A stretch of DNA of 62,894 nt, counting the filler, from Hyphochytrium catenoides (Eukaryota > Protista > Hyphochytriomycota): NCBI GenBank assembly GCA_900088475.1. It is 14 parts of 14 records of this genome, joined end to end, with 100 filler letters (N's around TTAATTAATTAA, not from the genome) between each part and the next. Parts side by side here need not be neighbours in the genome. Positions count along the whole stretch, not along the records: positions 1 to 18,695 come from FLMG01003904.1; 13 more parts are not named here. One strand, written 5' to 3'. Both the position numbers and the translations under genes were made by a program. Below the pieces are notes generated by a model, which was given only the letters and a program-made list of their open reading frames with translations, did no database searches and was not told where the DNA came from. How positions within the stretch are numbered: position 1 is the stretch's first letter; each line of letters starts with the position of its first letter. This document shows, one piece after another, positions 1 to 19,331 of this stretch.

Positions 1-745
1 CCGTATACTATACCTCGTGGAGCTTGGAGCAGAAGAGATTGCTGCATCATCTCGCCAATCATCCAGGATGATGGCTCTCTTGGAAGTCACAAGGCCGTCC
101 TGTTGGCCGCAGGAAGAGCCAAGTGCCCAGTGATTAGCAAGTAGCCCTCTCTCAAAGATATCCATAATGTCCATTGGACATGGCGACGTGGTGTTCGCTT
201 CTTGAGGTCACTCTAAGGTAAGAGAGAGTTGGGCGGGAGACTGATACTACCTCTGAAAGTCACTAATCGATGAGGCTCCACCCATGGTCTATTGACTCTT
301 CTATCACTCATAAGAGTATCTAATAAGGTGGTCGAGGCTTCTAGGACCCTTGAGCTTGAGAGCGAGGACGAGTCTGCCGCTAACTCGTCTCCGTCCGTCC
401 GAGCTACCGGACAGTATGGACAGAAGTACGGAGAAGTCGGTGATGGAGTAGTGAGGGGCAGATGATGTTTCTATAGAGAGAGGAGGAGCTACTAGCTCGG
501 GCAGCAGGCAGCAGACAGACATGGAAACGTCGAGCAGGACTTACGCTATGCGGATCTTCATGTAGACCAAACACTGAACCGTCATAGTAAAGAGTGGTAG
601 AGCACTTTGACAGAGGTACCTATAATATGTTAGATGGCGTGCTGCCGCCTCGGTCCAGCTTCAGAAGCAATGAATGTCAGAGAGTAGGTGAAGTTGCTAG
701 TCCTGATAGGCCCAAGCTGATGCTTGGAGTCCTGAGTGTCGTGAG

Positions 746-885
746 CTGCCCTCTTGCAAGTCGCCCTCTTGCAGCCTGTCCTCTTGCAGCCTGTCCTCTT
801 GCAGGTTGCCCTCCTGCGCAGGCTGCCCTTCTGCGGGCTGCCCTCTTGCAGGATGCCCTCTTTGCAGGCTGACCTCTTGCGGGCT
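746..885. repeat. Minisatellite, ~15-bp unit (ctgccctcttgcagg), ~9 copies
   Basis: Directly visible degenerate tandem units. Confidence 0.85.
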
Positions 886-2869
886 GCTTGGCACTAATGA
901 CCCGCTGATAAGAAGCAGGCTTGCTGTGCAGAAAGCCAGCCAGCGAGGACACCGGTGCATTGGGACGGTTGATGGAGTGGATGCCCTTGTGACGCTGGTA
1001 AGTGTGAGGATGAAAGCCATGCCAACACCTCATTATCACGGGAAGGAAAAGGACATTACTGCGACTTATTATGACTCTCTTCAACGGCCTGATGAACAAC
1101 CATCAGAAGAGAAGGTATGAACGTCGCTCAATCCCTGAAACCACCTCGTTTGCCACATCTGCTTCTTTTTTCCCCTCAGATTATTAGGTCAGCTTTGCAA
1201 GGCTTGCACAGCCACATTGCATAATACCTACTGTCGGAAGAGGAAGAAAGTATACACAGCGACATTGCAAGACTCCTGCCGGAAGGGAATCGGGGCGTAC
1301 AATTGCATAAGGGCTACATTCCGCAGCAGAGTGAAAATTGGTCATGTGGGCATAGGATCCCTCCTATGTGTGCTAGGGCAGGTTCCGCGAGTCAAAGAGT
1401 ATGATATACCTTCTTCAGGCCTGCGGTGGTCCGCCACGTCAAGCTGTGTTACGTCCATGACGGGTCTAGTCCCATACATTAATATGGGTGTGGTCGCCAA
1501 ATATGGTCGAATGGCCGTCAATGCCGAACATGAAGCTCTGCCTAAGTTCACTTAATGAATTTATATATGGGCTGCAATCAGCACCACGAACTCTCTTGCA
1601 TATGAACTTATCTAGAGCGGCATGTTCTGCATAATCGGACATGCGACCATCTCTTGGCCATGCACAATAAGATGATTGAGAGGCAATGTCATGATGGTGG
1701 TGCGTGATAGGGCATCCCTTCTATGGCTGTGCTTAGTCAGGCACGACTAGTCAACAGACATTAAAGGCACACATCAACCAGAGGAGCTCATCATGTAAGA
1801 GGAACAAACTCCTCTCTTCTTGCTTGTCGAAGGCGCTAGTAATGATAGTAGGGTAGACAGGACGACCTCAACTCCTAGTTCTACTCTCTCCCTCTTCTCG
1901 CCCTTCTCTCTCCTTCTGTCCTCTCTCTCCTTCTGTCTTCTCTCTCTTTCGTTCCCCTCCCCCACTCTCACTCCTTTCTAGCCCTCTACTCTCTCTCCCT
2001 CACTTTCTTTATCTTCTAATCTCCTCCCTACTACTCCCTTAAGTCTCCTTCCTAGGCGTGGAGACATTTGCCGATGTCTCCTGCAAAAGCATAAAACTCC
2101 GTCCCTAAGACGCTCTAAGAAAGAGAAGAATCTTGCCTTTATAGGTCCAGGAGGAGATGGGAGATGATGCATGGCTACGAAGAAGAGTATGACCATCATC
2201 TCAGATCATCGCCACCCTTTCCATCTTTCTTGCCAAAGTTTGGGCGATCCAAGCGATGGAGATCCTGCACCCGAAGCGAAGGCCATCTCTGGATCTCTGG
2301 GTGCTCCCAAAGAAGCTTCACCGTCATTGTTTTCTATAAACAATCGCCGGCAAGTAGCGGGTAACGTACATCACAAGAGCCTTGATAAACTACAGGGCAA
2401 GAGAGCCGCAAACGGCATGAGCTTCGTGATGCTTGGCTGATCTCCGTTCAGCTGTCAAAAGAGAAGCTTCAAGAGCTCCAGGAAGGGCACCAGGGACCAC
2501 GCCGACCGTAAGCGGAGCGCTGATTCTTCTAGTGAGAGGAGAAGAGCGACTGCAGGAGCTTCAGCAGGGCCACGCCGTCGGCCCCAAGCAGACGACGGAT
2601 AGCCTTCAAACAAGCAAAGCAAGCTCCTTTCTTTCGGCTCGGCGAGGAGCTAGGAGTACCGGCCTGGGACCGACGAGCTTCTAGTGGATCAAGAGAATGA
2701 AGCGCTCCTCTTCTCTGTCAGCCGGCTGCCACACCCTCCCTTAGTCAGTGCTACGGCGCGGCATCTGGCGCTATGCCCCTTGAGAAGAAACTTGATGAAG
2801 GACTGACCCCGTTGTGACTCATCGAGCTCTCAAGTCGAGTGCCAGGGATTGCTGCACCTGCAACTCACC

Positions 2870-5800
2870 ATGGCCAGCAGGGCCATTGCGAAAGCATGTC
2901 TTGGAGGGAGGGCTGGCTTCCGACCTCACTACTATGGGATTTGGACCAAGGCGACCAGTAGTAGAATAACATCACAGGCGGTCAGCAGGTCCCACGGTAT
3001 CAGAGCGTACACAGGGCTCACGGGTCCCCTGGCCTGGAACCCTACCAGGGAAAGATACACAGGCCAACGGGTGGACCCATCGAGAGAACTCTGTCAGCGG
3101 ACGTTTGCAACAGCACTGGCTAGGACGAAGAATAAAGGCACTCGTGCCTCTGCGCTGCAGCATACGGAGAATGAGACGGCTACTGATGGAGGTCAGCGAC
3201 CTTCAGTTGTGGCCCTTACTCGGCTCGTTGCCAAGTATGGCGCTCAGAAAAATCTTCGGGCCGTTGAGAAGGTTTTATACAAGCGCATGCCTGAGGCTGG
3301 TGTGAAGCCCGATGCGTTCACCTGCTCTGAGGTACTGAAGGCGTACCTAAAGGCTGGTGAGCTCGACAGGGCCGAGACATTTCTGCGTGACGGAATGCTG
3401 TCGCTGGGAGTTAAGCCAACTGCTATTCACTTCAACCAGCTCCAGGGAGGCTATGCTTCTGTGGGTAAGTTGCAGGCTATGGAGGAGATCCTGTACAAGC
3501 GCATGCCTGAGGCTGGTGTGGAGCCCGATGGGATCAGCTGCTCTGAGGTACTGAAGGCGTACATCAAGGCCAGAGAGCTTGACAGGGCAGATGTATTTCT
3601 ACGTGATGGAATGGTGTCGCTAGGAGTAGAGCCAACTGCTATTCACTTCAACCTGCTCCTGGGAGGCTACGCTTCTGTGGGTAAGTGGCAGGCTATGGAG
3701 GAGATTTTGCACAAGCGCATGCCCGAGGCTGATGTGAAGCCCGATGAGATCAGCTGCTCTGAGGTTCTAAAGGCGAACATCAAGGGTGGTGAGCTCGACA
3801 GGGCCGAGACATTTCTGGGTGACAGAATGCTCTCGCTAGGAGTAAAGCCAACTGGTATTCACTTCACCCAGCTCCTGGGAGGCTATGCTTCTGTGGGTAA
3901 GTGGCAGGCTATGGAGGATATCCTGTACAATCGCATGCCTGAGGCTGGTGTGAAGCCCAATGAGATCACCTGCTCTGAGGTACTGAAGGCGTACATCAAG
4001 GCCGGTGAGCTCGAGAGGGCCGAGACATTTCTACGTGACAGAATGCTGTCGCTAGGAGTAAAGCCAACTGGTATTCACTTCACCCAGCTCCTGGGAGGCT
4101 ATGCTTCTGTGGGTAAGTGGCAGGCTATGGAGAAGATCCTGGACAAGCGCATGCCTGAGGCTGGTGTGAAGCCCAATGAGATCACCTGCTCTGCGGCACT
4201 GAAGGCGTACATCAGAGCTGGTGAGCTTGAGAGGGCCGAGACATTTCTGCGTGACAGAATGCTGTCGCTAGGAGTAAAGCCAACTGGTATTCACTTTACA
4301 AAGCTTCTGGGAGCCTACGCTTCTGTGGGAAACTGGCAGGCTATGGAGGAGCTCCTGTACAAGCGCCGGCCTGAGGCTGGGTTGCAGCTGAAGTTTGACA
4401 AGGTCGATTCCTTTGAGGTGGTGATGAAGAATCTTAAGGCAAGAGAACTGGCAGCAAAGCGTATTGATGACGGTGTTGCATTACTACGAGGGAAGTCAAA
4501 CGCTGTGAACTTCAATCAGACTATAGAGAGTGAAAAGGCTACCGACAGAGGTCAGCCACCTTCAGTTGAGGCCCTTACTCGGCTGATCGCCAAGTATGGC
4601 GCTCAGAAAAATCTTTGGGCCGTTGAGAAGGTTTTATACAAGCGCATGCCTGAGGCTGGCGTGAAGCCCAATGAGATCACCTGTTTGGAGGTACTGAAGG
4701 CGTACATTAAGGGTGAAGAGCTTGAGAGGGCAGATATATTTCTGCGTCAGAGAATGCTGTCGCTAGGAGTAAAGCCAACTGTTCCTCACTTCAACCTGCT
4801 CTTAGGAGGCTATAGTTCTGTGGGTAAGTGGCAGGCGGTGGAGAAGATCCTGTACAAGCGCATGCCTGAGGCTGGTGTGAAGCCCAATGAGATCAGCTGC
4901 TCGGAGGTACTGAAGGCGTACATCAAGGCTGGTGAGCTTGAGAGGGCAGAGATATTTCTGCGTGACGGAATGCTGTCGTTAGGAGTAAAGCTGAGTGCTC
5001 TTCACTTCAACCTGCTCCTGGGAGGCTATGGCTCGGGAGGTGACTGGCAGTCTATGGAGGACATCCTGTACAAGCGCATGCCTGAGGCTGGTGTGAAGCC
5101 TGATGAGATCAGCTGCTCTGAGGTACTGAAGGCGTACATCGGGGCCAGAGACCTCAAGAGGGCCGAGACCTTTCTGCGTGACGGAATGCTGTCGCTAGGA
5201 GTAAAGCCGACTATTACTCACTTCACCCGGCTCCTGCGAGGCTACGCTTCTGTGGGTAAGTGGCAGGCTATGGAGGAGATCCTGCACAAGCGCATGCCTG
5301 AGGCTGGATTGCAGCTGAAGTTTGACAAGATCAGCTCCTTTGAGGTGGAGATAAAGAATCTTAAGGCTGAAGAACTTCCAAGGACAGCAAAGCTTATTAA
5401 TAACGGTGTTCCATTGCCACAAGGGAAGTCAAGCGCTGTGAACTTCAATCAGAATATGGAAAGTGAGAAGGCTACTGACAGAGGTCAGCCACCTTCACCT
5501 GTGGCCCTTACTCGGCTGATTGCCAAGTATGGCGCTCAGAAAAATTTTCTGGCCGTTGAGAAGGTTTTATACAAGCGCATGCCTGAGGCTGGTGTAAAGC
5601 CCGATGAGATCACCTGCTCTGAGGTACTGAAGGCGTACGTCAAGGCTGGTGAGCTCGAGAGGGCAGAGACATTTCTGCGTGACGGAATGCTGTCGTTAGG
5701 AGTGAACCCAAATGCTATTCACTTCACCCGGCTCCTGAGAGGCTATGGTTCGGAAGGTGACTGGCAGGCTATGGAGAAGATCCTGTACAAGCGCATGCCT

Positions 5801-6625
5801 GAGGCTGGTGTGAAGCCCGATGAGATCAGCTGCTTGGAGGTACTGCAGGCGTACATTAGGGCCGGTGAGCTCGAGAGTGCAGAGATATTTATGCGTGAGG
5901 GGATGTTGTCGCTAGGATTAAAGCCAGATGCTTTTCACTTCACCCAGCTGCTGGGAGGCTATGGTTCTATGGGTAAGTTGCAAGATATGGAGGAGATCCT
6001 GCACAAGCGCATGCCTCAGGCTGGTGTGAAGCCCAGTGAGATCACCTGCTCTGAGGTTCTGAAGGCGTACATCAAGAGTGGAGAGCTCGAGAGGGCAGAT
6101 ACGTTTCTGCGTGACGGAATGCTGTCGCTAGGAGTAAAACCAAATAAGATCCACTTCACCCAGCTCCTGGGAGGCTATGGTTCTCTGGCTGACTGGCAGT
6201 CTATGGAGGAGACCCTGTACAAGCGCATGCCTGAGGCTGGTGTGAAGCCCGATGAGATCAGCTGCTCTGAGGTACTGAAGGCGTACATTAAGGCTGGAGA
6301 GCTCGAGAGGGCAGAGATATTTCTGCGTGACGGAATGCTGTCGCTAGGAGTAAAGCCAAGTGCTATTCACTTCACCCTGCTCCTGAGATTCTATGGTTCT
6401 GTGGGTAAGTTGCAAGATATGGAGGATATCCTGTACAATCGCATGCCTGAGGCTGGTGTGAAGCCCGATGAGATCAGCTGCTCTGAGGTTCTGAAGGCGT
6501 ATCTTAAGGCCGGTGAGCTCGAAAGAGCAGATACATTTCTGCGTGACGGTATATCGTCCCTCGGAGTAAATCCGCACGCTAGACGTGTTCGCTCGATCAT
6601 GGAGAGGTATCGTTCTTCCAAGTAA
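2870..6625 (+). CDS. Pentatricopeptide-repeat protein, copy 1 (intronless, 28 PPR motifs in 3 modules, likely mitochondrial presequence)
   Basis: Uninterrupted ORF. The ATG at 2870 is in caccATGG context and conserved in copy 2. 36-aa motifs EISCSEVLKAYIKAGELERAETFLRDGMLSLGVKPT and AIHFTQLLGGYASVGKWQAMEEILYKRMPEAGVKPD match the PPR pattern (Y-x3-G ... M-x3-G-V-K-P-D/N). The N-terminus is R/S/T/A-rich, acid-poor, and contains QRTFATA. Modules at 3206-4399, 4565-5326 and 5498-6577. Confidence 0.93.
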   Translation: MASRAIAKACLGGRAGFRPHYYGIWTKATSSRITSQAVSRSHGIRAYTGLTGPLAWNPTRERYTGQRVDPSRELCQRTFATALARTKNKGTRASALQHTENETATDGGQRPSVVALTRLVAKYGAQKNLRAVEKVLYKRMPEAGVKPDAFTCSEVLKAYLKAGELDRAETFLRDGMLSLGVKPTAIHFNQLQGGYASVGKLQAMEEILYKRMPEAGVEPDGISCSEVLKAYIKARELDRADVFLRDGMVSLGVEPTAIHFNLLLGGYASVGKWQAMEEILHKRMPEADVKPDEISCSEVLKANIKGGELDRAETFLGDRMLSLGVKPTGIHFTQLLGGYASVGKWQAMEDILYNRMPEAGVKPNEITCSEVLKAYIKAGELERAETFLRDRMLSLGVKPTGIHFTQLLGGYASVGKWQAMEKILDKRMPEAGVKPNEITCSAALKAYIRAGELERAETFLRDRMLSLGVKPTGIHFTKLLGAYASVGNWQAMEELLYKRRPEAGLQLKFDKVDSFEVVMKNLKARELAAKRIDDGVALLRGKSNAVNFNQTIESEKATDRGQPPSVEALTRLIAKYGAQKNLWAVEKVLYKRMPEAGVKPNEITCLEVLKAYIKGEELERADIFLRQRMLSLGVKPTVPHFNLLLGGYSSVGKWQAVEKILYKRMPEAGVKPNEISCSEVLKAYIKAGELERAEIFLRDGMLSLGVKLSALHFNLLLGGYGSGGDWQSMEDILYKRMPEAGVKPDEISCSEVLKAYIGARDLKRAETFLRDGMLSLGVKPTITHFTRLLRGYASVGKWQAMEEILHKRMPEAGLQLKFDKISSFEVEIKNLKAEELPRTAKLINNGVPLPQGKSSAVNFNQNMESEKATDRGQPPSPVALTRLIAKYGAQKNFLAVEKVLYKRMPEAGVKPDEITCSEVLKAYVKAGELERAETFLRDGMLSLGVNPNAIHFTRLLRGYGSEGDWQAMEKILYKRMPEAGVKPDEISCLEVLQAYIRAGELESAEIFMREGMLSLGLKPDAFHFTQLLGGYGSMGKLQDMEEILHKRMPQAGVKPSEITCSEVLKAYIKSGELERADTFLRDGMLSLGVKPNKIHFTQLLGGYGSLADWQSMEETLYKRMPEAGVKPDEISCSEVLKAYIKAGELERAEIFLRDGMLSLGVKPSAIHFTLLLRFYGSVGKLQDMEDILYNRMPEAGVKPDEISCSEVLKAYLKAGELERADTFLRDGISSLGVNPHARRVRSIMERYRSSK

Positions 6626-7859
6626 TACCGCTTCACTTTCTCGAGGGTTTTGTACCCGCTGATAGATGTGCTGGCGCGGGTGCTTAGATGGGGAAGTCAA
6701 GTTGTTTGAGGTGGCGGATCTCTGTCATCCTGCTCTCCAGGAGCGTGATGAGTAGGAGCTGTAAGGTTCTGGTTGTTCCGCGTATCCCTTTGTCCCTAGA
6801 GGCAGTTAGCGACCGTCTATCTTTGATGATAGTGATGTGTTGAAGGAGAGCTTGCAGGTCGTGGGAGGCTTCTCACGCCCTCAGAGGACCCACACTCTCC
6901 CCTTGTGAGTCCAATTAACTCTATACCCCTAAATCCAGCTGTCTCACTGGAGGTGCTCACCACCTTGACAGCCATTTTATAAGAGAAAGACCTTTATAGT
7001 TTTAAGACTAACCGCTGGCGACGGAATGGCGCTGCCCCACAGACATCATCACGATGAAGACTCAATTCTCTTAAGTGCAGTGGAGTTGCTTTAGGTTAAT
7101 CAGATTAGCATGACGGGGCTTTTGCCACTACCTGAGAGGTGAAGGCTGTGGGCGGATGATGTATGCAGCAAAGAAGGCCGCCCGATTGCTAAACAGGGAG
7201 TGGACGAGCAGCTTTAGCAATAAGCAGCGAGCCAGAGAGAACCAACAGGCCAAGCTGCGCTAGCTATAGTCTTCTTTCTCGTGAGACACCGTCTCAGCCG
7301 TATACTATACCTCGTGGAGCTTGGAGCAGAAGAGATTGCCGCATCATCTCGCCAAGCATTCAGGATGATGGCTCTCTTGGAAGTCTTAAGGCCGGCAGGT
7401 TGGCCGCAGGAAGAGCGAGGTGCCCACCAATTAGGACGTAGCCCTCTGTCAAACATAGCTATAGTGTCCATTCCTCTGAGGTAAGAGAGAGGGTGGGCGG
7501 GAGAATGATACTACCCTGAAAGCCATGGAATGATGAGGCTCCACCCATGCTCTATTGACTCTTCCTCACTCATAAGAGTATCTAAGAGAAAAGAGTAGCT
7601 TACTGGGCGCCAGCACAGCGGACGGAGCTGGAGCACCACGAGCAGAACTTACACTAGCGGCTCTTCATGTGATCCCAACACTGCCAGAATCGTGATAGAA
7701 AGAGCTCCAGAGCATATAAACAGAGGCACCCGTCATAAGGTAGTAGGTCACGTGCTGCCGCCTTCTTTGTCCGCTTTCAGCAGTAGTGACGTCAAAGAGT
7801 AAGGTTAACATGCTAGTCTCCTCATTCAGCCCAAGCTGATGCTCGGAGTTCTGAGTCCC

Positions 7860-8126
7860 GCAGGCTTCTCTCTTGCAGACATCCCTCCCTCTGCAGACTC
7901 CCTTCCCTCTTGCAGGCTTCCTTCCCTTTTGCAGACTTCCTGCCCTCTTGCAGACTCCCTTCCCTCTTGCAGACTCCCTTCCCTCTCGCAGGCTTCCTTC
8001 CCTTTTGCAGACTTCCTTCCCTCTTGCAGACTTCCTTCCCTCTTGCAGACTTCCTTCCCTCTTGCAGACTCCCTTCCCTCTTGCAGACTTCCTTCCCTCT
8101 TGCAGACTTCCTTCCCCCTTGCAGAC
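7860..8126. repeat. Minisatellite, 19-bp unit (gcagacttccttccctctt), ~14 copies
   Basis: Directly visible tandem units, with the same flanks as the 746-885 array. Confidence 0.9.
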
Positions 8127-8680
8127 TGCTTGGCACACTGATGACCCGTTGCTAACAAGCCGGTGTGCTCCGCCGAGAGCAGAGAGCCTGATGACCTGTG
8201 AGCCTCATAGAAATATTGAATGTCTTTGAAAGGACAAACTGCCCGTACATCCAGAGGAGCGTTAGCGGTTAAAATGCCACAGAGTGAGAGCCGCTAACGC
8301 CATCCTCCGTTTGCCCTCACATGTCCAACGCCACTTCCAAGAGCTATATTACCAAAGCCCACCCAGGCTTCCCCCAGTAGATGATTGACGGACAAGCAAA
8401 GCAAGCTCCTTTCCTTGTCATCCTATCGTGATGCGAGGCGGGAGGGAGGAGCACTGTGGCCAGACGCCAGACAGACGGAGCTTCAAGAGAATATTTAAAG
8501 CGGGCTCCGCTTCTCTGTCAGCCTGCTGCCACACCCTCCCTTGGTCAGTGCTACGGCTCGGCACCGGGCACTATGAATGCCTCCTCTGAAAGAAGAAGCT
8601 TGATCAAGGACTGCTGACCCCTTTGTGCTCATCGAGCTCCTCAAGTCCGGTGCCAAGGATTGATGCAGCTGCAACTCACC

Positions 8681-11600
8681 ATGGCCAGCAGGGCCATTGC
8701 GAAAGCATGTCCTGGAGGGAGGGCTGGCTTCCGACCTCACTATTATGGGATCTGGACCAAGGCGACCAGTAGTAGAATAACATCACAGGCTGTCAGGAGG
8801 CCCCGCGGCATCAGAGCGTACACAGGGCTCACGGGTCCCCTAGCCTGGAACTGTACCAGGGAAAGATACACAGGCCAACGGGTGGACCCATCGAGAGAAC
8901 TCTGTCAGCGGACCTTTGCAACAGCACTGGCTAGGACGAAGAAGAGAGGCACTCGTGCCTCTGCGCTGCAGCATACGGGGAATGAGACGGCTATTGATGG
9001 AGGTCAGCCACCTTCAGTCGTGGCCCTTACTGGGCTGATTGCCAAGTATGGCGCTCAGAAAAAACTTCGGGCCGTTGAGAAGGTTTTATACAAGCGCATG
9101 CCTGAGGCTGGTGTGAAGCCTGATGAGATCAGCTGCTCTGAGGTACTGAAGGCGTACATCAAGGCCGGTGAGCTCGAGAGGGCAGAAGCATTTCTGCGTG
9201 ACGAAATGCTGTCGCTGGGAGTCAAGCCAACTTTAATCCACTTCAAACTGCTCCTGGGAGGCTATGGTTCTGTGGGTAAGTGGCAGGCTATGGAGGACCT
9301 CCTGTACAAGCGCATGCCTGCTGAGGCTGGTGTGAAGCCCGATGTGATAAGCTGCTCTGAGGTACTGAAGGCGTACATTAAGGCGGGAGAGCTCGAGAGG
9401 GCAGAGACATTTCTGCGTGACGGACTGCTGTCGCTAGGAGTAAAACCAACTGTTATTAACTTCAACCAGCTCCTGGGAGGCTTTGCTTCTAAGGGTAAGT
9501 GGCATGCTATGGAGGAGATCCTGTACAAGCGCATGCCTGAGGCTGGAGTGAAGCCCGATGGGATCAGCTGCTCTGAGGTACTGAAGGCGTACATCAAGGC
9601 TGGTGAACTCGAGAGGGCAGAGGCATTTGTGTGTGGCGGAACGCTGTCGCTAGGAGTTAAGCCAACTGTTATTCACTTCAACCAGCTCCTGGGAGGCTAT
9701 GGTTCTGTGGGTAAGCGGCATGCTGTGGAGGAGATCCTGCACAAGCGCATGCCTGAGGCTGGAGTGAAGCCCGATGAGATCAGCTGCTGGGAGATACTGA
9801 AAGCGTACATCAAGGGTGGTGAGCTCGAGAGGGCCGAGACATTTCTGCGTGAAGGAATGCTCTCGCTGGGATTAAAGCCAACTGTTGCTCACTTCACCCG
9901 GCTCCTGGGAGGCTACGCTTCTGTGGGTAAGTGGCAAGCTATGGAGGATATCCTGTACAAGCGCATGCCTGAGGCTGGATTGCAGCTGAAGTTTGACGAG
10001 ATCAGCTCCTTTGAGGTGGTCATCAAGTATCTTAAGGCAGGAGAACTGGTAGCAAAGCACATTGATGACGGTGTTGCATTGCCACAAGGAAAGTCAAACG
10101 CGATGAACGTCAATCAGAATATAGAGAGTGAGAAGGCTACTGATAGAGGTCAGCCACCTTCAGCTGTGGCCCTTACTCGGCTGATTGCCAAGTATGGCGC
10201 TCAGAAAAATCTTTGGGCCGTTGAGAAGGTGTTATACAAGCGCATGCCTGAGGCTGGGGTGAAGCCCGATGAGATCACCTGTTTGGAGGTACTGAAGGCG
10301 TACATTAAGGGTGAAGAGCTTGAGAGGGCAGATATATTTCTGCGTGAGAGAATGCTGTCACTAGGAGTAAAGCCAACTGTTCCTCACTTCAACCAGCTCC
10401 TGGAAGGCTATAGTTTTGTGGGTAAGTGGCAGTCTATGGAGGAGATCCTGTACAAGCGCATGCCTGAGGCTGGCGTGGAGCCGAATGAGATCACCTGCTT
10501 GGAGGTAGTGAAGGCGTACATCAAGGGTGGAGAACTCCAGAAGGCAGACGCATTTCTGCGTGACGGAATGCTGTCGCTAGGAGTAAAGCCAAATGCTTTT
10601 CACTTTACCCAACTGCTGGGAGGCTATGGCTTGCGGGGTGAGTGGCAGGCTATGGAGGACATTCTGTACAAGCGCATGCCTGAGGCTGGTGTGAAACCCG
10701 ATGACATCATCTGCGCTGAGGTACTGAAAGGTTACATCCAGGCCGGTGAGCTTGAGAGGGCCGAGACATTTCTGAGTAACGAAATGGTGTCACTAGGAAT
10801 AAAGCCAACTGCTATTCACTTCACCCAGCTCCTGAGAGGCTATGGTTCGGCGGGTGACTGGCAGTCTATGGAGGAGATCCTGTACAAGCGCATGCCTGAG
10901 GCTGGTGTGAAGCCCAATGAGATCACCTGCTTGGAGGTACTGAAGGCGCACATCAAGGCCGGTGAGCTTGAGAGGGCAGAGACATTTCTGCGTGACGGAA
11001 TGCTGTCGCTGGGAGTAAAGCCAACTGTTATTCACTTCACCCAGCTCCTGGGAGGCTATGGTTCTGTGGGTAAGTGGCAGGCTATGGAGGAGATNNNNNN
11101 NNNNNNNNNNNNNNNNNNNNGACTATTACTCACTTCACCCGGCTCCTGCGAGGCTACGCTTCTGTGGGTAAGTGGCAGGCTATGGAGGAGATCCTGGACA
11201 AGCGCATGCCTGAGGCTGGATTGCAGCTGAAGTTTGACAAGATCGGCTCCTTTGAGGTGGAGATAAAGAATCTTAAGGCAAAAGAACTTGCAAGGGCAGC
11301 AAAGCGTATTGATGACGGTGTTCCATTGCCACAAGGGAAGTCAAGCGCTGTGAACTTCAATCCGAATATGGAGAGTGAGAAGGCTACTGACAGAGGTCAG
11401 CCACCTTCACCTGTGGCCCTTACTCGGCTGATTGCCAAGTATGGCGCTCAGAAAAATTTTCAGGCCGTTGAGAAGGTTTTATACAAGCGCATGCCTGAGG
11501 CTGGGGTGAAGCCCGATGAGATCACCTGCTCTGAGGCTCTGAAGGCGTACATCAAGGCTGGAGAGCTTGAAAGGGCAGAGACATTTCTGCGTGCCGGAAT

Positions 11601-12753
11601 GCTGTCGCTAGGAGTGAACCCAAATGCTTTTCACTTCACCCTGCTCCTAGGAGGCTATGGTTCAGTGGGTAAGTGGCAGGCTATGGAGGAGGTCCTGCAC
11701 AAGCGCATGCCTGAGGCTGGGGTGAAGCCCAATGAGTTCAGCTGCTCTGAGGTTTTGAAGGCGTACATTAAGGCTGGAGAGCTTGAGAGGGCAGATGTAT
11801 TTCTACGTGACGGAATGCTGTCGCTAGGAGTAAGGCCAACTGTTATTCACTTCAACCTGCTTCTGGGAGGCTATGGTTCAGTGGGTAAGTTGCAGGCTAT
11901 GGAGGAGATCCTGTACAAGCGCATGCCTGAGGCTGGTGTGAAACCCGATGAGATCAGCTGCTCTGAGGTACTGAAGGCGTACATCAAGGCCAGAGAGCTT
12001 GAAAAAGCAGATACATTTCTGCGTGACGGAATGCTGTCGCTAGGAGTAAAGCCAACTGCTATTCACTTCACCCAGCTTCTGGGAGGCTATGGTTCAGTGG
12101 GTAAGTGGCAGGCGGTGGAGGAGATCCTGTACAAGCGCATGCCTGAGGCTGGTGTGGAGCCCGTTGAGATCACCCGCTTGGAGGTACTGAAGGCATATCT
12201 TATGGCCAGAGAGGTTGAAAAAGCAGATACATTTCTGCGTGACGGAATGCTGTCGCTAGGAGTAAAGCCAACTGCTATTCACTTCACCCTGCTGCTAAGA
12301 GGCTATGGTTCGGGGGGTGACTGGCAGGCAATGGAGGGGATCCTGTACAAGCGCATGCCTGAGGCTGGTGTGAAGCCCGATGAGATCGCCTGCTCTGAGG
12401 TACTGAAGGCGTATCTTAAGGCCAGCGAGCTTGAAAGAGCAGATACATTTCTGCGTGACGGAATGCTGTCGCTAGGAGTAAAGCCAACTGCTATTCACTT
12501 CACCCAGCTTCTGGGAGGCTATGGTTCAGTGGGTAAGTGGCAGGCTATGGAGGATATCCTGTACAATCGCATGCCTGAGGCTGGTGTGAAGCCCAATGAG
12601 ATTACCTGCTTGGAGGTACTCAAGGCGTATCTTAAGGCCAGAGAGCTTGAAAGAGCAGATACATTTCTGCGTGACGGTATACCGTCCCTCGGAGTAAATC
12701 CGCACGCTAGACGTGTTCGCTTGATCATGGAGAGGTATCGTTCTTCCAAGTGA
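8681..12753 (+). CDS. Pentatricopeptide-repeat protein, copy 2 (paralogue of 2870-6625, spans an assembly gap at 11095-11120)
   Basis: Near-identical N-terminus, linkers and C-terminus (ARRVR[SL]IMERYRSSK) to copy 1. ORFs 8660-11230 and 11074-12753 are two halves separated only by 26 Ns. Modules at 9017-9997, 10163-11238 and 11410-12705. Confidence 0.9.
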
Positions 12754-14222
12754 TGCCGCTTCACTTTGTCGAGGATTTTATACCTGCTGATAGGTGTGCT
12801 GCGCGGGTGCTTCGATGGGGAAGTCAAGTTTTTTGAGGTGGCGGATCTCTGTCATCCTGCTGCCCAGGAGCGTGATGAGTAGGAGCTGTTAGGATTAGTT
12901 CTGGCTGTTCCGCGTATCCTTTATCCATAGAGGCAGTTAGCGACCGTCTTTCTTTGATGATAGTGATGTGTCGAAGGAGAGCTTGCAGGACGTGGGAGGC
13001 TTCTCACGCCCTCAGAGGACCCACACTCTCCCCTTGTGAGTCCAATTAACTCGATACCGTTAAATCCAGCTGTCTCACTGGCGGTGCACACCACCTTGAC
13101 AGCCAATTAAAAGAAAGACCTTTATAGTTTTAAGACTAACCGCTGGCGACGGAATGGCGCTGCCCCACAGACATTATCGGGATGAAGACTCAATTCTCTT
13201 AAACGCAGTGGAGTTGGTCTAGTATTTGATCCTTATGGCAGGGCTTGGCCTGAGAGGTGAAGGCTGTGAACCGATGAGGTCTGCAGCAAGCGAGGGTTGT
13301 TGGAGTGCCCTAAGGGAGAGTTAATGAGCAGCTTCAAGCAGGTTAGTCAGAGGTTAGAGGAAACAACAAGTGGCCAAGCCTATGACCCTAGCTATGGTCT
13401 TCTTTCTTTTGGGAGCCCATCTCAGCCGTATAACAATAGTTTGTACTCGAAGAAGCTTTGGAGCAGAAGAGACTGGTGTATCATCCCAGCAAAGGGTCCA
13501 GGATGATGGCTCTCTCTTGAAACGCCTGAGAAAAATCCTAGGAGGTGGAGGCTTCCCGAAGTCTTGAGGAGAGAGACTAAGACGAGCTTGAGGGGCACCT
13601 CCGGACCAGGTAGAGAACCTCTAACTCCAATCACTATCACTATTGCACTACTTCGTTCTTGAGTTGCAGTTGACAAGCTAGCATTCGCTAACCCACAAAA
13701 AGTATGGTTTGACAGACCGGCAAAAGGACTCCAGGGAATTGAACTCTGCAACTGTACAATGCTGGCAGCGTAGTGTCATAGATGAGGATGAAAACCCGAG
13801 GCAGACAAGAGGGTTACATGCACATGATGCAAGAGCGAGGGTCCCAGTAGAGCGACGGGAGAGTAAAGCTAGGTATTTGCTGAGAGACCAAGGCTGCCAG
13901 AAGTAGAAGTCATCCTTGCGTGCACTCTCGAGCCATAGAGTCTAAACACCCAAACAACCAATGTTGGGCTCTCTAGTGTGTCAAGGGCAGTTTTGACTGA
14001 AATGTGGTCAGCCTTGCTAACTTTGCGCACGGCTAAGACGTCGATTCAAGACACAAGGCCCCGCTCGCGTTATCAAGGAGAATCATCGGATTCAGTTCCT
14101 TTTCTATAAGCAGATGGACCGTGAAGAAGGCAGTGAGATCAAGTGAAACTCCAAGCAGAGCGCTAGGTAAAGAAGGAGGAAACACGTCTCAGAAGTGCAT
14201 TATAGTGAGTGGGACCAATAGC

Positions 14223-14582
14223 TTAGTAGTCATCGCCTCCGCCGCCGAACATGTCCATTCCGCCGCCAAGGTCAGCCTCTTCCTCCTCTTCCTCCTCCTT
14301 CTTGGCAGGAGCACCAGCAGCAGGTCCTGCACCAGCAGCAGCAGCACCACCAGCGGCAGCAGCACCACCTCCGCCGCCGCCGATAGAGACCGATGAGATC
14401 TTGGCCTTGCCTGCAGCCACAACCTCGTTGATGTCCTTGCCCTCGAGCTCGGAAATGAGAGCGTTGAGCTTCTCAGAATCAGCCTCAGCGCCAACTGCGC
14501 TCAGGATAGCTTCTACTGCAGAAGCATCGGGGGAGGTGTTGCCTCCAAGAACGGCTAGGAGATAAGCAGCTACGTGACGCAT
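14223..14582 (-). CDS. RPLP2: 60S acidic ribosomal protein P2
   Basis: MRHVAAYLLAVLGGNTSP...ILSAVGAEAD...LISELEGKDINEVVAAG, an Ala/Gly hinge and an acidic tail. The ATG directly follows a 5'-UTR intron at 14583-14678 (GTGAGT...TCCAG). Confidence 0.96.
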   Translation of the reverse strand: MRHVAAYLLAVLGGNTSPDASAVEAILSAVGAEADSEKLNALISELEGKDINEVVAAGKAKISSVSIGGGGGGAAAAGGAAAAGAGPAAGAPAKKEEEEEEEADLGGGMDMFGGGGDDY

Positions 14583-15217
14583 CTGGAGACGAAAGAGAGA
14601 CAGCAGAGATCCATCGACAAGCTTTAATTTCTTTAAACCCAGCGCTTCAATGACAAGTTCAGGAACTCTAAGACTCACCTTTTTTAAGGTTGAATACCTG
14701 ACAACGTCTTGTTTCGCTGCCTTTGCGTAGATATGATGGTGATGAAGATTTGGAGAGCAAAGTCCGAGGTGCTGTCCGCGTCTCCGGCTGGTGAAGCTTG
14801 CTCAGAGCTTCAGATCTCCTCCGTTATTGGCTTTCCAGGCCGCGCCGTGAGTGGTGGCGGCAGGATGACCCCTATAGCCAAGCAGTAGGGTTAGTACAGA
14901 GCCATTATATTCCGGTACATCCTTATAGGGGGTCTAAATATCTAACCTCCCTTTATATGAGGTTGAGGAAGTAGATCACAGGCTAGTTCCGACTAAAGCC
15001 TTTGGCCAAGGATACATTGACGCCTTTATGGAGAAAAATATAGATATATGATAATCTCATACTAAGCTAAAATGGTAACTATTTCAAGTTGATAAATTCC
15101 CAGAGTTCGTTTACGACCTAATCATTAACAGCTTTCGTCCGTGAATCCTATCTTCAATCCCACGGCACTTCCTAAACCTACGCCTCTCTGATTTTAGATG
15201 GGTTTCTTCAAAATAAG

Positions 15218-18089
15218 ATGTGGTTCTGTCTCGTTTTTGCCATAATCGAGGATGCTGATTCGGGATTTTGGCGCTTGTACAGGGCGCTGAGGCGTGAGTC
15301 ACATCATCCGTGCCGCAGTCCGCGTCCCACTGTCATCGAAGTAACAGCTTCCACTTTCTGGGCCCTCATCTATAGAGCAGAAGTCTCTAGAATGTCGGGG
15401 CGGAGTACGTGAAGAAGCTTCACGTCCAGAAGCAGGGATACATCTACACTGGAAGCTCTGTCTAAGTGTGTTCCTGCAATCCCTGATCCTGTAAGCGGCA
15501 CCGGTGCTGTCCATCATGTCCTTTGCTGGGAGCAAAGGGCAGGAGAAGAAGAGTGGATCTACAGCGAGCATTGAGATTGATCTAAGCAAAGAAGGCATCG
15601 CCACCGCAGTGGCTCACTCTATAATCGGGAGGAGAAGCAGACAGGAGGTAGGGACTGATCACTAGCACGGGAGCCGAGCAGTCGAGAGCTGACGTGTACA
15701 AGGATCGGCCTTTTCCCCATCTACTGTCCATGTAGTCTGGCTTGGTTTTGCCTTCTTTCTCCCATACTTCAGCCATCTTCTTGCTTTGGCGTGGCGGAGT
15801 CTCTAAATAGAGCTTTGGGTCCTCATCCGCATATAAGCCTCTTTTTCACAATCCTCTCTATTTCTTCTTTCCTTTGTTCTGTCGCCCTAGTTGCCGAAGG
15901 GCCTTTCTCTTTTCTTTCCATAGACATATAACAAGCTACGTCTTCTTATTCGTTCTGATCCGTGGTCCAACCTATATCTGTCTCACTTACTGCTAGGACA
16001 CCGCCTACATCAGCGATCCGGAAGGTAGAGTACCTATCAATGTCAGGTGTGGCTCAGGGACACAAATCTATGGCGTGTTCGATGGACATGGCGGCAACAG
16101 AGCCTCAGGATTCTGTGCAGAGAAGATTGCTTCATATGTGAGCAGCTTTGAGCAGGAGACCAACAGATTGGACGAGAACGTGCTGGCGAAAGCACTGAGA
16201 CAACTAGGTAAACCGTTTATTCTCTCTTTGTCCTCTTCCTTCGCCACCCGCAGGGTCCGAACTTCATTATTCTTTTTGCTCGTCGTTGTCCTTCCCGCCA
16301 GCTGCCTTTCTTGATGTCTGGGTGTGGGCTTATTATGCATCTCTGATCACCCTCATCCTCCATTCTACCGCCAGTCAACTACGTCGCTTACTCTCGGCTT
16401 CCCAACCCTCTCTACTATTCTGCCATAATACTAGTCTAATGCTAGCTGCTGCGTGGCAATATGCCCCTCTGGTTCTACTAGCGGTATTCTGACCTTCTTT
16501 CCTTAGATGCGGACTTCTGCAGTTGCGTTGACACGGTCAGGACACCGCATTCCCGTTATATCATGGACGATGGGACCACCGCCATTGTTGTCGTCCTGAG
16601 AGAAAAGACTTTGTACGTGGGAAATGTAGGAGATTCAAGGGCAATCCTGATCAGGAGCGACTGGAGTACTCTTCCGCTGTCCAGAGGTACGACTACAGCT
16701 TGCTATAGCTAGAAACCAGGGATGGTGCGTTTTGCCCCAGGATATGGAAAGATAAAGAGAAGATCTTATGAGTGTTTGCGCTGAATCGGCGAGAGTCAGT
16801 TAGGTAATGCCTAGAGCAACCAAGAGAATATCGAGAGAAGGGGAAGAGGGAGGAGTGGGCAAGCCCATGTGAGCAGTGGACAAATTAGCTGACGAGAACT
16901 CTTGCGCTTTTGTCCAGATCAAAAGCCATCGCGGCCAGACGAGAAACAGCGATTGGAGGCCAGTGGTGCGAAGGTCACTGGATTAGTTTTTGGCTGTGAA
17001 TTCCCGCGGTTCTTGCTGCACTATTGGCCGTTTAGCATGATATTCGACGTGCCCCGAGTGAACGGCATCTTGGCGGTAAGTTACGCTAGCAGCGGCGGAC
17101 TCCTCATACTCCCCTCATCTTGCCTCTTCTACCGCTTGCTTTACTGCATCTCCCTTTAGATTGAGCTTCGGTCATTTTCTCTTGTCGCAATCTTGCTATC
17201 CTCCTTTAACCCCTATACCAGTGTCTTCTGTTTATTTTGCCGGCGCCCTACGTACTTGTACATGAGCAGCTATCGGTGCTCTTACTCTTTTCCCATCTGC
17301 TGTTGGCCCTTTGCTACTGTACTATTCATACTGAAAGGCCATGGAGGGATTGTCATATCCGGTTTGCTCTCTACCGACCGGCGACTGCCTTTCAAGTGTA
17401 TCTTCCCTTCTTTACTACCCTGTCCAAGACTTTAGTGAGGCTGTCCCGCTGTCTTCTATCCACTTCATATACAACCCACTTTCTCGCCATTATTGCTTGC
17501 TCTGTCCGTCCATTATCACACCCACTCAGCTAAATGAATACCGTCTTTTCTCTCGCGCCCTGTCTTCTCCCAGATGTCACGAGCCATTGGGGACCGAGGG
17601 TTAAAGAGCTTTATTATCTCTGAGCCTGAGGTGGAGAGGTTCGAACTTACAGAAGGAAGAGACCAATTCTTAGTGCTTGCGACAGACGGCGTCTGGGATG
17701 TGCTAGACAACAAGCGCGTTGCCAACATAATCCGCGGAGAACTTACGAAGTTCGGATCAGAGAGCTACACTGTCTCCCAGCTGCTCGAGAGGGCAGCCAG
17801 AGCAATATGCATGAGAGCGATGAAGTCAGGAAGTTTGGACAATATCACGGTGGTCATTGTAGACCTAAGGCCAGTATTCCTCAGCACTAAACGGCAGCTG
17901 AAGCAGCCGATGAGCGCGGAGAACAGTGGAAGGCTGGGGGGGAGAGGACCTTCCTCTTGCTCTTCTTCTTTCAAGACGCCTGTTGTGCAAGCGAGTCCGT
18001 CAACCGCTTCGGAGGAAGAGGAGCTGGTGGTGGAGACGGGCGTCTGTGTGGAAATTATGGCAGAAAGCAGCAACATCATGGCGTCATAG
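15218..18089 (+). CDS. Protein phosphatase 2C (PPM family), spliced
   Basis: In-phase exons 15496-15647, 15997-16207, 16507-16686, 16918-17075 and 17574-18089 give GRRSRQED, GVFDGHGG, DGTTA, NVGDSRA, SRDQKP, RVNGILAMSRAIGD, LATDGVWDV and GSLDNITV. The first exon 15218-15404 is tentative; alternative start ATG 15516. Confidence 0.92.
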
Positions 18090-19331
18090 TGCGAGAAGAG
18101 AAGATTAGGAGAAAGAGGAGGAGAACGAGGGACTGCTGAGTCCTAATGGCAATATTTATTCTTTTAAGTCGTTGTTGCAGGCAGTAAAATCCACTGTTAG
18201 CCTCCGTTGAACTGAGGCGCGATACTCCTCTGTCCTAACTGCTCTAGGAACTGTCATTAGCTCGGCTTTCTCTCTTCTTCCTTCTTCTCGTTAGCTCTTC
18301 TTTTACACTTAGGTTATTATCTATTCTCCTATTTACCCTTCTGACTTGTCTCTTCTCTCGCCTTCTTCTTCATCTTCTTTTCCTTAGCTGTGGTTCGTTT
18401 ATCTATTCTTCTCCTTGTTACTTTCTAACCTCGGCCCCTCCAGCCGTCCTCCTCTTCTTCTTCGCTTAGCACCATCATCCTGCTGATGTTGATGGCTCTT
18501 CTATTTAATTTGATCCTTCACGATCGATGGTCCTCTTGTCGCTATTATCTCTTCCTTCTCAATCCCTCTTTCACAAATTATGCTCCTTCGTGCTCCCCTC
18601 TCTACTTGCGTTCATTCTCAGCACTTTCTCTCTCTTTCTTTTTCTCTTTTTTATTCTCCTCCCCCACCCCACCCCCTCCACTCCTGGTTCTCCTCNNNNN
18701 NNNNNNNNNNNNNNNNNNNNNNNNNNNNNNNNNNNNNNNTTAATTAATTAANNNNNNNNNNNNNNNNNNNNNNNNNNNNNNNNNNNNNNNNNNNNGAAGC
18801 AGAGAGAGAGAGAGAGATCCAATAGAGTGACAAAGAGAGAAAAGAGGAGAGAGAGAGAGAGAAAGAGAGAGAGAGAAAAAGGAAATGAGACCAAAGAAAG
18901 GGTCCGCAGAGAGAGTGAAGAGAGAGAGAGAGAGTGTGTTAGCATCAAGACAAGCAAGATAAGCTTCAGCTTCTTAGAGATCTAGGCTTTTAGTTCTCGC
19001 GGCGAGGAAGAAGGGAGGAGAGAGAGAGAGAAACAGAGAGAGAATGAGAAAGAGAGAAACAGAGAGAGGAAGGGAGAGTTTTATTTGGCAAGAAGCAAAA
19101 AGAAAAAGGAGAGGAAGGGACAGTGTGAAGGACACGAGACTTGGTTGGAAAAAAAGACAGAAAGAGCAGAGAGAGAATGAAAGAGATTGAGAAACAAAGG
19201 AGAGACAGGGAGAGACACGAAAACGGAGAGAGAACAAACCGAGAGGGGAAATCCAGAGAGAGAGAGAGAGAGAGAAGTAGCAGGAGACAGAGAAGATAAG
19301 AGAGAGGGTCAAAGTCTTGACGGGGCGTTAC

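Follow-up and report, generated by a model that had tools for sequence, protein, structure and literature searches.

We analysed a window of 62,894 nucleotides, filler included, from the hyphochytrid Hyphochytrium catenoides. The window is made of 14 parts of 14 records of one genome assembly (GCA_900088475.1; 61 Mb in 4759 records), joined end to end with 100 filler letters between parts. Positions 1-18695 come from FLMG01003904.1 (contig label C2965; other paralogs are named here by contig label). This part has a sparse pattern of open reading frames (ORFs), as in eukaryotes, and it carries two tandem genes for pentatricopeptide repeat (PPR) proteins in which two classes of motif, A and B, alternate. 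Gene 1 lies in a forward-strand open frame that extends from 2849 to 6625 in DNA of 52% GC; its first ATG, at 2870, opens 1251 codons. The frame of gene 2 is open apart from 26 N at 11095-11120, a gap in the assembly. By blastn, gene 1 and its flanks (2704-7000) were duplicated at 8504-13128 with ~88-89% identity, and the start context ACCATGG is common to both genes.

Table 1. Features of the two PPR genes, in positions of the window.
Feature	Positions	Strand	Basis and remarks
Gene 1, dyad-type PPR coding sequence, intronless, 1251 amino acids (aa)	2870..6625	+	ORF list and translation; stop codon 6623-6625
N-terminal ~112 aa of gene 1	2870..3205	+	Presequence-like: 9 R/K and 0 D/E in first 60 aa, S/T/A-rich
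PPR block 1: variant B motif, B' (3206-3313), and five 216-bp A+B dyads (3314-4393); 11 motifs	3206..4393	+	Tandem Repeats Finder (TRF), translation, hidden Markov model (HMM) typing, AlphaFold2 (AF2)
Linker 1, ~57 aa, predicted disordered	4394..4564	+	Translation, AF2
PPR block 2: B' and three dyads; 7 motifs	4565..5320	+	TRF, translation, HMM typing
Linker 2, ~59 aa, homologous to linker 1	5321..5497	+	Translation, sequence comparison
PPR block 3: B', four dyads and a terminal A; 10 motifs	5498..6577	+	TRF, translation, HMM typing
Basic C-terminal tail, 15 aa, no E/DYW/SMR domain	6578..6622	+	Translation, Pfam
Gene 2, tandem paralog built like gene 1	8681..12753	+	Open frame 8660-12753

The repeating unit of gene 1 is a dyad of 216 bp that encodes 72 aa, an A motif of 36 aa followed by a B motif of 36 aa. 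TRF found 216-bp arrays at 3278-4380, 4637-5307 and 5570-6570 (matches 84-89%, indels 0%, scores 971-1723) and arrays of like kind in gene 2. The translation of gene 1 contained 28 motifs, each exactly 36 aa long, in the order B'(AB)5, linker, B'(AB)3, linker, B'(AB)4A. We typed the motifs of all paralogs with A and B HMMs that were trained on the close family only (defined below), and found that the order BABAB was strict in every paralog, that BB occurred solely at linkers, and that the register of amplification was never 108 bp. An earlier reading of this DNA, made from sequence alone (the sequence-only reading), had proposed a strictly alternating 216-bp dyad of 36-aa rather than 35-aa motifs, bounded by positions 3206 and 6577, in a protein that ends 15 aa after the last motif and has no E/DYW or SMR domain. 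TRF, translation and HMM typing agreed with one another on the dyad and on its order, and the motif length held throughout gene 1. The two bounds coincided exactly with the start of motif 1 and the end of motif 28, the tail leads from the terminal A motif to the stop codon, and PPR families alone were above threshold in Pfam.

The motifs belong to the PPR superfamily by profile and by predicted fold. The Pfam families matched by gene 1 were PPR_3 (1e-83), PPR_2 (7e-73), PPR_long, PPR and PPR_1; PF13812 scored 275.6 bits (cut-off of 25) and PF13041 scored 241 bits, and PF17177, PF01535 and PF12854 were also above cut-off. We modelled five dyads (3314-4393) with AF2, using a 16-row paralog alignment as input. 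The model had a predicted local distance difference test score (pLDDT) of 92.6 and a predicted template-modelling score of 0.78, with 20 helices in ten identical units, each made of a helix of 12-13 residues, a turn, a helix of 14 residues and a loop. The top Foldseek matches were designer PPR-RNA complexes (5I9G, 5I9F, 5I9H and 5I9D; E values of 1e-14 to 1e-16, the best 7.6e-16), followed in rank by cPPR, dPPR10 and maize PPR10. All of the top matches were PPR proteins. The sequence-only reading would have fallen if the fold were not a PPR solenoid; the confidence of the model and the Foldseek ranking both point to a PPR solenoid. When we compared the motifs with PDB chains using phmmer, each 36-aa motif paired with one 35-aa motif of the designer PPR 5I9F with one gap, which fell in helix b, and residues 5 and 36 landed on the PPR code positions. 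The residues found there are those of the PPR code in B motifs and partly so in A motifs.

Two linkers, which the sequence-only reading did not describe, divide the array into three blocks. The final B of block 1 decays into linker 1. An AF2 model of a segment across this linker (4064-5104; 3-row alignment) had pLDDT below 50 at residues 109-162 and confident solenoids on either side, and as modelled gene 1 looks like three PPR modules (11, 7 and 10 motifs) on flexible tethers. Both linkers resemble a decayed A motif plus half of a B motif, and block 1 is preceded by sequence like that at a linker's end, which suggests that gene 1 arose through internal duplication (triplication) of the entire mature module.

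The two classes of motif have different scaffolds and different residues at the code positions. We used the 72 intact dyads of the close family for these comparisons. The conserved scaffold of A is I2, C4 (69/72), L8, K9, A10, Y11, K13, A20, F23, S30, L31 and G32, and that of B is H3, F4, L7, L8, G10, Y11, S13, E21, L24, R27, M28, E30, A31, G32, V33 and P35. Identity between A and B was 27% for protein and 43% for DNA. In B motifs, position 5 was N or T in 71/72 and position 36 was D or N in 72/72, each toggling within a two-letter alphabet. The pairs at 5/36 were ND (27), TN (17), TD (14), NN (13) and DN (1), and thus one of ND, NN, TD and TN in 71/72. These four are the canonical PPR pairs and cover U, A, G and C. 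In A motifs, position 5 was mostly S (51; A 10, L 5, C 3, T 2) and position 36 was varied (T 27, S 14, N 12, C 8, D 6); the pairs included ST (18), SS (12), SN (8) and LT (3). The sequence-only reading had described A motifs with Cys at position 4 and mostly non-canonical pairs and B motifs with canonical pairs, and the counts bear this out for both classes. Lys9 was present in 71/72 and Lys13 in 68/72 A motifs, at positions where B motifs have Gly9 and Ser13. Lys13 touches an RNA phosphate in designer PPR structures; if it does so here too, A motifs may make backbone contacts and B motifs base contacts.

The difference in code residues was also apparent when we graded the pairs by published binding strength. 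In designer PPR (dPPR) assays, ST and SS bound A only as a smear, SN, SD, AD and CD were strong codes, position 5 was purine-type when it held S, T, A, C or G, and many further pairs were without binding (Yan et al. 2019, PMC6468296). By this list, the B pairs were strong in 71/72, and the A pairs were strong in 16/72, weak in 30/72 and non-binding in 26/72. Strong codes were present in 18/23 B motifs versus 5/23 A motifs of three older paralogs described below (Fisher p = 0.0003). Based on these results, we conclude that A and B differ in code residues with solid statistical support.

A motifs might nonetheless all read a base. Every motif would then contribute, with A either restricted to purines or using a novel code tuned by the hypervariable position 36, and the targets would be contiguous with alternate purines. 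The purine-type residues at A5 (S, A, C, G and T), the strong SN, SD, AD and CD pairs, and the weak preference of ST and SS for A are in keeping with this possibility (PMC6468296), as is the rate of change at A36. In pairwise Nei-Gojobori comparisons, the codons with the highest proportion of nonsynonymous differences (pN) relative to the global proportion of synonymous differences (pS) were A22 (1.58), A36 (1.45), A27 (1.32), B1 (1.26) and B14 (1.21). The A36/B1 junction is therefore among the fastest-evolving spots, and a value of ~1.45 is as expected of a specificity-determining site. However, the 26 non-binding pairs of the close family and most A pairs of the older paralogs are without reported binding (LT, AC, GR, RK, RD), and A5 is far less confined to code residues than is B5. 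We consider it unlikely that every motif reads its base in this way.

The dyads belong to a family that is spread over the genome and appears to be amplifying. At least 15 contigs carry such dyads, ~125 in all. Identity in the close family is 64-80%, and its members (C2767, C1149, C4408, C183, C1873, C1634, C420, C4325, C4263, C1238 and C1676) encode proteins of 440 to >1250 aa, and more than 10 paralogs have intact frames. Within the close family, DNA identity between dyads was 85.2% within one gene versus 79.5% between genes, and the nearest neighbour of a dyad came from the same gene in 37/72 cases, versus 6.2 expected. Judged by these identities, the pattern shows amplification or homogenisation, apparently ongoing, in the 216-bp register. 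The high regularity of gene 1 is due to recent amplification of this unit, and intragenic amplification, the three-module build and the tandem gene copy together account for much of the regularity in the window. Neither the tandem copy of gene 1 nor the intragenic amplification was part of the sequence-only reading.

The A/B alternation is older than this amplification. Units that are 84-89% alike at the DNA level with no indels, and dyads that are more alike within a gene than between genes, would also be expected if there were no functional classes and the alternation were a mere by-product, arising when a DNA unit that by chance covers two ordinary PPR motifs was recently amplified in tandem. 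In three older paralogs (C58, C2157 and C2495, with 45%, 33% and 28% identity to gene 1), the repeats have diverged from one another, but the dyad spacing was 72-74 aa, mostly exactly 72 aa, and the A/B order and the code asymmetry were retained. In C58, A motifs scored 12-42 bits with the A model and no more than 4.6 bits with the B model, B motifs scored 21-58 bits with the B model and no more than 3.6 bits with the A model, and the alternation was unbroken over 19 motifs. In contrast, the canonical PPR gene C3753, also of H. catenoides, had a spacing of 35/70 aa. Recent amplification as the sole cause is largely refuted by these older paralogs with their low identity between repeats. The low identity between A and B in gene 1 and its close relatives and the absence of any amplification in a 108-bp register also argue against a by-product, which we regard as very improbable. 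Because the older paralogs keep the period and the order, and because A and B are just 27% alike, we conclude from the paralog comparisons that the dyad architecture is real and old, and that recent amplification of the unit is laid on top. Two further loci (C120:4302-4481 and C1539:1318-1521) gave weak matches to the dyad profile described below (45-53 bits) and could be either ordinary PPR genes or dyad-type genes of yet greater age.

We found no dyad-type PPR protein outside this genome in the searches that we made. We built a dyad profile of 72 positions from 49 dyads, including those of the older paralogs, and compared it with 1.84 billion representative proteins using HMMER. The best 150 of 29,127 matches (at least 169 bits, a range in which short or fragmentary relatives with lower scores could be missed) all had a spacing of 35/70 aa and at most 50 bits per stretch. 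The H. catenoides dyads had 75-120 bits per stretch at a spacing of 72 aa, scores that are inflated by the use of these sequences in training. The best outside total was 398 bits, for a canonical PPR protein of 3173 aa with 35 matched stretches, and the totals of the H. catenoides paralogs were 417-1510 bits. In a word-indexed search with gene 1 and C58 as queries, the best matches were canonical PPR proteins with 20-27% identity, with no self match, and the dyad HMM found none with a 72-aa period among them. Exact look-ups of the PPR, ribosomal P2, cox1 and cox2 proteins in the protein collection found none of them, indicating that the proteome of this genome is absent from the databases. A scan of JGI metagenomes with a five-dyad alignment gave 123 pattern matches, of which 0 were confirmed, and literature searches found no account of a dyad-type PPR class. 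The paper on the H. catenoides genome makes no mention of PPR proteins (PMC5795050). The sequence-only reading had not recognised the architecture as a described class; the profile search, the metagenome scan and the literature are in accord with that view, and paralogs with 28-45% identity preserve the architecture within the genome.

The dyad proteins are most similar to P-class PPR proteins. Like maize PPR10 and the designer proteins 5I9F and 5I9G, they have a helix-turn-helix solenoid, a strong match to Pfam PPR models, code positions in register, ND, NN, TD and TN pairs (in B motifs), and no catalytic C-terminal domain. Unlike the P class, in which P motifs are uniform and 35 aa long, they have a period of 36 + 36 aa and two alternating classes of motif, one of them with canonical pairs, and their identity to database PPR proteins did not exceed 27% in the word-indexed search. 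When aligned singly, both A and B motifs matched P-type designer motifs best; A scored 28.8 bits with the PLS designer protein 5IWW. This suggests that A and B both derive from P-type motifs and that A is probably not a plant-type L motif.

To our knowledge, the plant PLS triplet is the sole ordered arrangement of motif variants known in PPR proteins. Plant PLS editing factors resemble the dyad proteins in having ordered variants, one of which is weakly coding (the plant L motif, 35-36 aa; here, A). They differ in that theirs is a P-L-S triplet with S motifs of 31-32 aa, whereas here 36-aa motifs alternate in two steps with no S motif and no E1/E2 or optional DYW extension (there was no match to PF20431 or PF14432 in the Pfam scan of gene 1). 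The dyad class of this stramenopile is apparently of independent origin from plant PLS proteins.

Two other groups of organellar proteins are comparable in part. Angiosperm restorer-of-fertility-like (RFL) genes are also P-class-like genes of mitochondrial type that are tandemly duplicated and fast-evolving, with high nonsynonymous change near the code positions (here, A36 and B1). However, RFL proteins form a clade of plants and have P motifs of a single kind, 35 aa long, and here the growth is largely intragenic by 216-bp units, the host is a stramenopile, and the best plant matches had 21-26% identity. Unlike the case of RFL genes, we know of no link between the dyad family and mitochondrial conflict. 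HPR (37 aa) and OPR (38 aa) proteins are likewise alpha-solenoid repeat proteins that bind RNA, function in organelle gene expression and have expanded in particular protist lineages. They have periods and signatures of their own, whereas the dyad proteins have a period of 36 aa, match PPR Pfam models best and use the PPR code.

The dyad PPR proteins are probably mitochondrial. Over the first 60 residues, 12 paralogs had 7-12 R/K and 0-2 D/E each, with S, T and A abundant, and from this composition we infer a mitochondrial presequence. We searched the genome for psbA and found none; H. catenoides appears to be without a plastid. The mitochondrial DNA is contig C4759 (48,127 bp, 30.5% GC), with normal cox1 and cox2. 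The cox1 protein had 81-84% identity to cox1 of Nannochloropsis, Heterosigma, Saprolegnia and other stramenopiles, and 97% identity to an environmental sequence. An apicomplexan or dinoflagellate source, considered on grounds of composition, is at odds with so conventional a mitochondrial DNA and with its stramenopile cox1. An identical copy of cox1 is on a second contig, C1785. The cox2 protein (L031:31-1305, on C4759) is 424 aa long and has a low-complexity, Lys/Glu/Pro-rich C-terminal extension of ~190 aa.

We believe that the dyad proteins are probably a lineage-specific, P-type-derived PPR subfamily with 36-aa A/B alternation, located in mitochondria and drawing specificity mainly from B motifs. 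Each motif is a PPR helix-turn-helix with helix b one residue longer, making 36 aa. B motifs carry the nucleotide-specifying ND, NN, TD or TN pairs at 5/36, and A motifs keep the scaffold (Cys4, Lys9 and Lys13) but have a hypervariable last residue and pairs, such as ST, SS, AC and LT, that are purine-type or non-binding. Once imported into mitochondria, the proteins would hold single-stranded RNA in the inner groove of the solenoid with one motif per nucleotide. Specificity would come chiefly from every second nucleotide, aligned with B, and the nucleotide aligned with A would be read weakly, with a bias to A or to purines. The proteins would act as P-type PPR proteins do, as RNA stabilisers, processing barriers or modulators of translation, since there is no catalytic domain. 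Three processes would enlarge and diversify the family: unequal crossing-over with a register of 216 bp, the copying of entire modules, and tandem gene duplication.

The sequence-only reading suggested that the dyad may read every second base strongly, which is plausible. Because A pairs were not blank in the published dPPR assays, a purine-biased A reader of low specificity is as likely as a pure spacer, and a mechanism in which A motifs read weakly with a purine bias is just as good a variant. A bolder reading, which we hold only tentatively and find less probable than the P-type-derived subfamily, is that the proteins form an independent ordered 'A/B dyad' class seen solely in this hyphochytrid. 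In such a class, code motifs would alternate with motifs for scaffolding and backbone contact, and reading would be dinucleotide-periodic, with every second base recognised specifically.

Several observations weigh against a P-type-derived subfamily that reads RNA through its B motifs. The global template-modelling (TM) score of the five-dyad model was ~0.48 to RNA-bound dPPR, versus 0.70-0.72 to PPR chains of plant mitoribosomes. The predicted superhelix thus differs from the compact RNA-bound designer form, and the superhelix of gene 1 may be different from that form in reality. We also compared the code strings of 12 modules or proteins with the 48-kb mitochondrial DNA, and none fit better than permuted codes (fraction at least as good, 0.38-1.0), a scan with little power because there are 5-10 informative positions per string and the DNA is AT-rich. 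Both results would be expected of a structural or scaffold PPR protein, for example one associated with the mitoribosome (the superposition on rPPR chains was the best that we found) or one that binds protein, with no sequence-specific recognition of RNA. Such a protein would not be expected to have B5 and B36 confined to the four canonical pairs and toggling freely among them, and many rapidly diversifying paralogs of variable length are atypical of stoichiometric structural subunits. A purely structural role therefore seems improbable, with only slightly more in its favour than the by-product discussed above. In addition, A motifs are not free of code, and A36, the second most variable position, could contribute to specificity.

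The assembly also bears on how the arrays are read. It was made from short reads of a heterozygous diploid with Platanus (4758 scaffolds plus one mitochondrial record, ~65.7 Mb; PMC5795050), and the number and order of dyads within arrays may be imperfect. Together with the N gap in gene 2 and the several paralogs on short contigs that end within arrays, this would fit arrays that are non-functional, either pseudogenes or artefacts of short-read assembly. The 1251-codon frame of gene 1 in DNA of 52% GC, the many scaffold positions that do not vary, an overall pN/pS of 0.46, the conserved start context and presequence, and the number of paralogs with intact frames all argue otherwise, and we give this explanation the least credence of those considered.

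Organelles have in PPR proteins their main programmable readers of RNA, and a P-type-derived subfamily with this alternation would be informative in several ways. It would have a strict alternation of base-specifying and non-specifying motifs, kept over deep divergence of paralogs, and so be a natural test of how much contribution is needed per motif and of how one extra residue affects the geometry of the solenoid. If the dyad is indeed a second, independent ordered architecture, then division of labour among motifs evolved more than once. If the every-second-base design is true, it is a principle used by no characterised PPR protein, and could inform engineered RNA binders; designer PPRs might also gain a new scaffold in the dyad. 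The family would be a rare non-plant case of rapid PPR diversification, occurring through in-register amplification of repeats, and is a hint that mitochondrial RNA targets change quickly in a stramenopile lineage that has received little study.

Other features lie around the two PPR genes. A PP2C-type phosphatase gene at 16075-18089 (+) is split by introns of several hundred bp, confirming that the contig is eukaryotic. Downstream of the PPR genes, an ORF at 14226-14582 (-) encodes a protein like ribosomal stalk protein P2, with a Gly/Ala hinge from GCA repeats and a C-terminus that ends in ...MDMFGGGGDDY versus the usual ...MGFGLFD. Non-coding tandem arrays precede both PPR genes, one at 745-887 (15-bp unit, nine copies) and the other at 7865-8127 (19-bp unit, 14 copies, 89% matches), and the two arrays have the core CCCTCTTGCAG in common.

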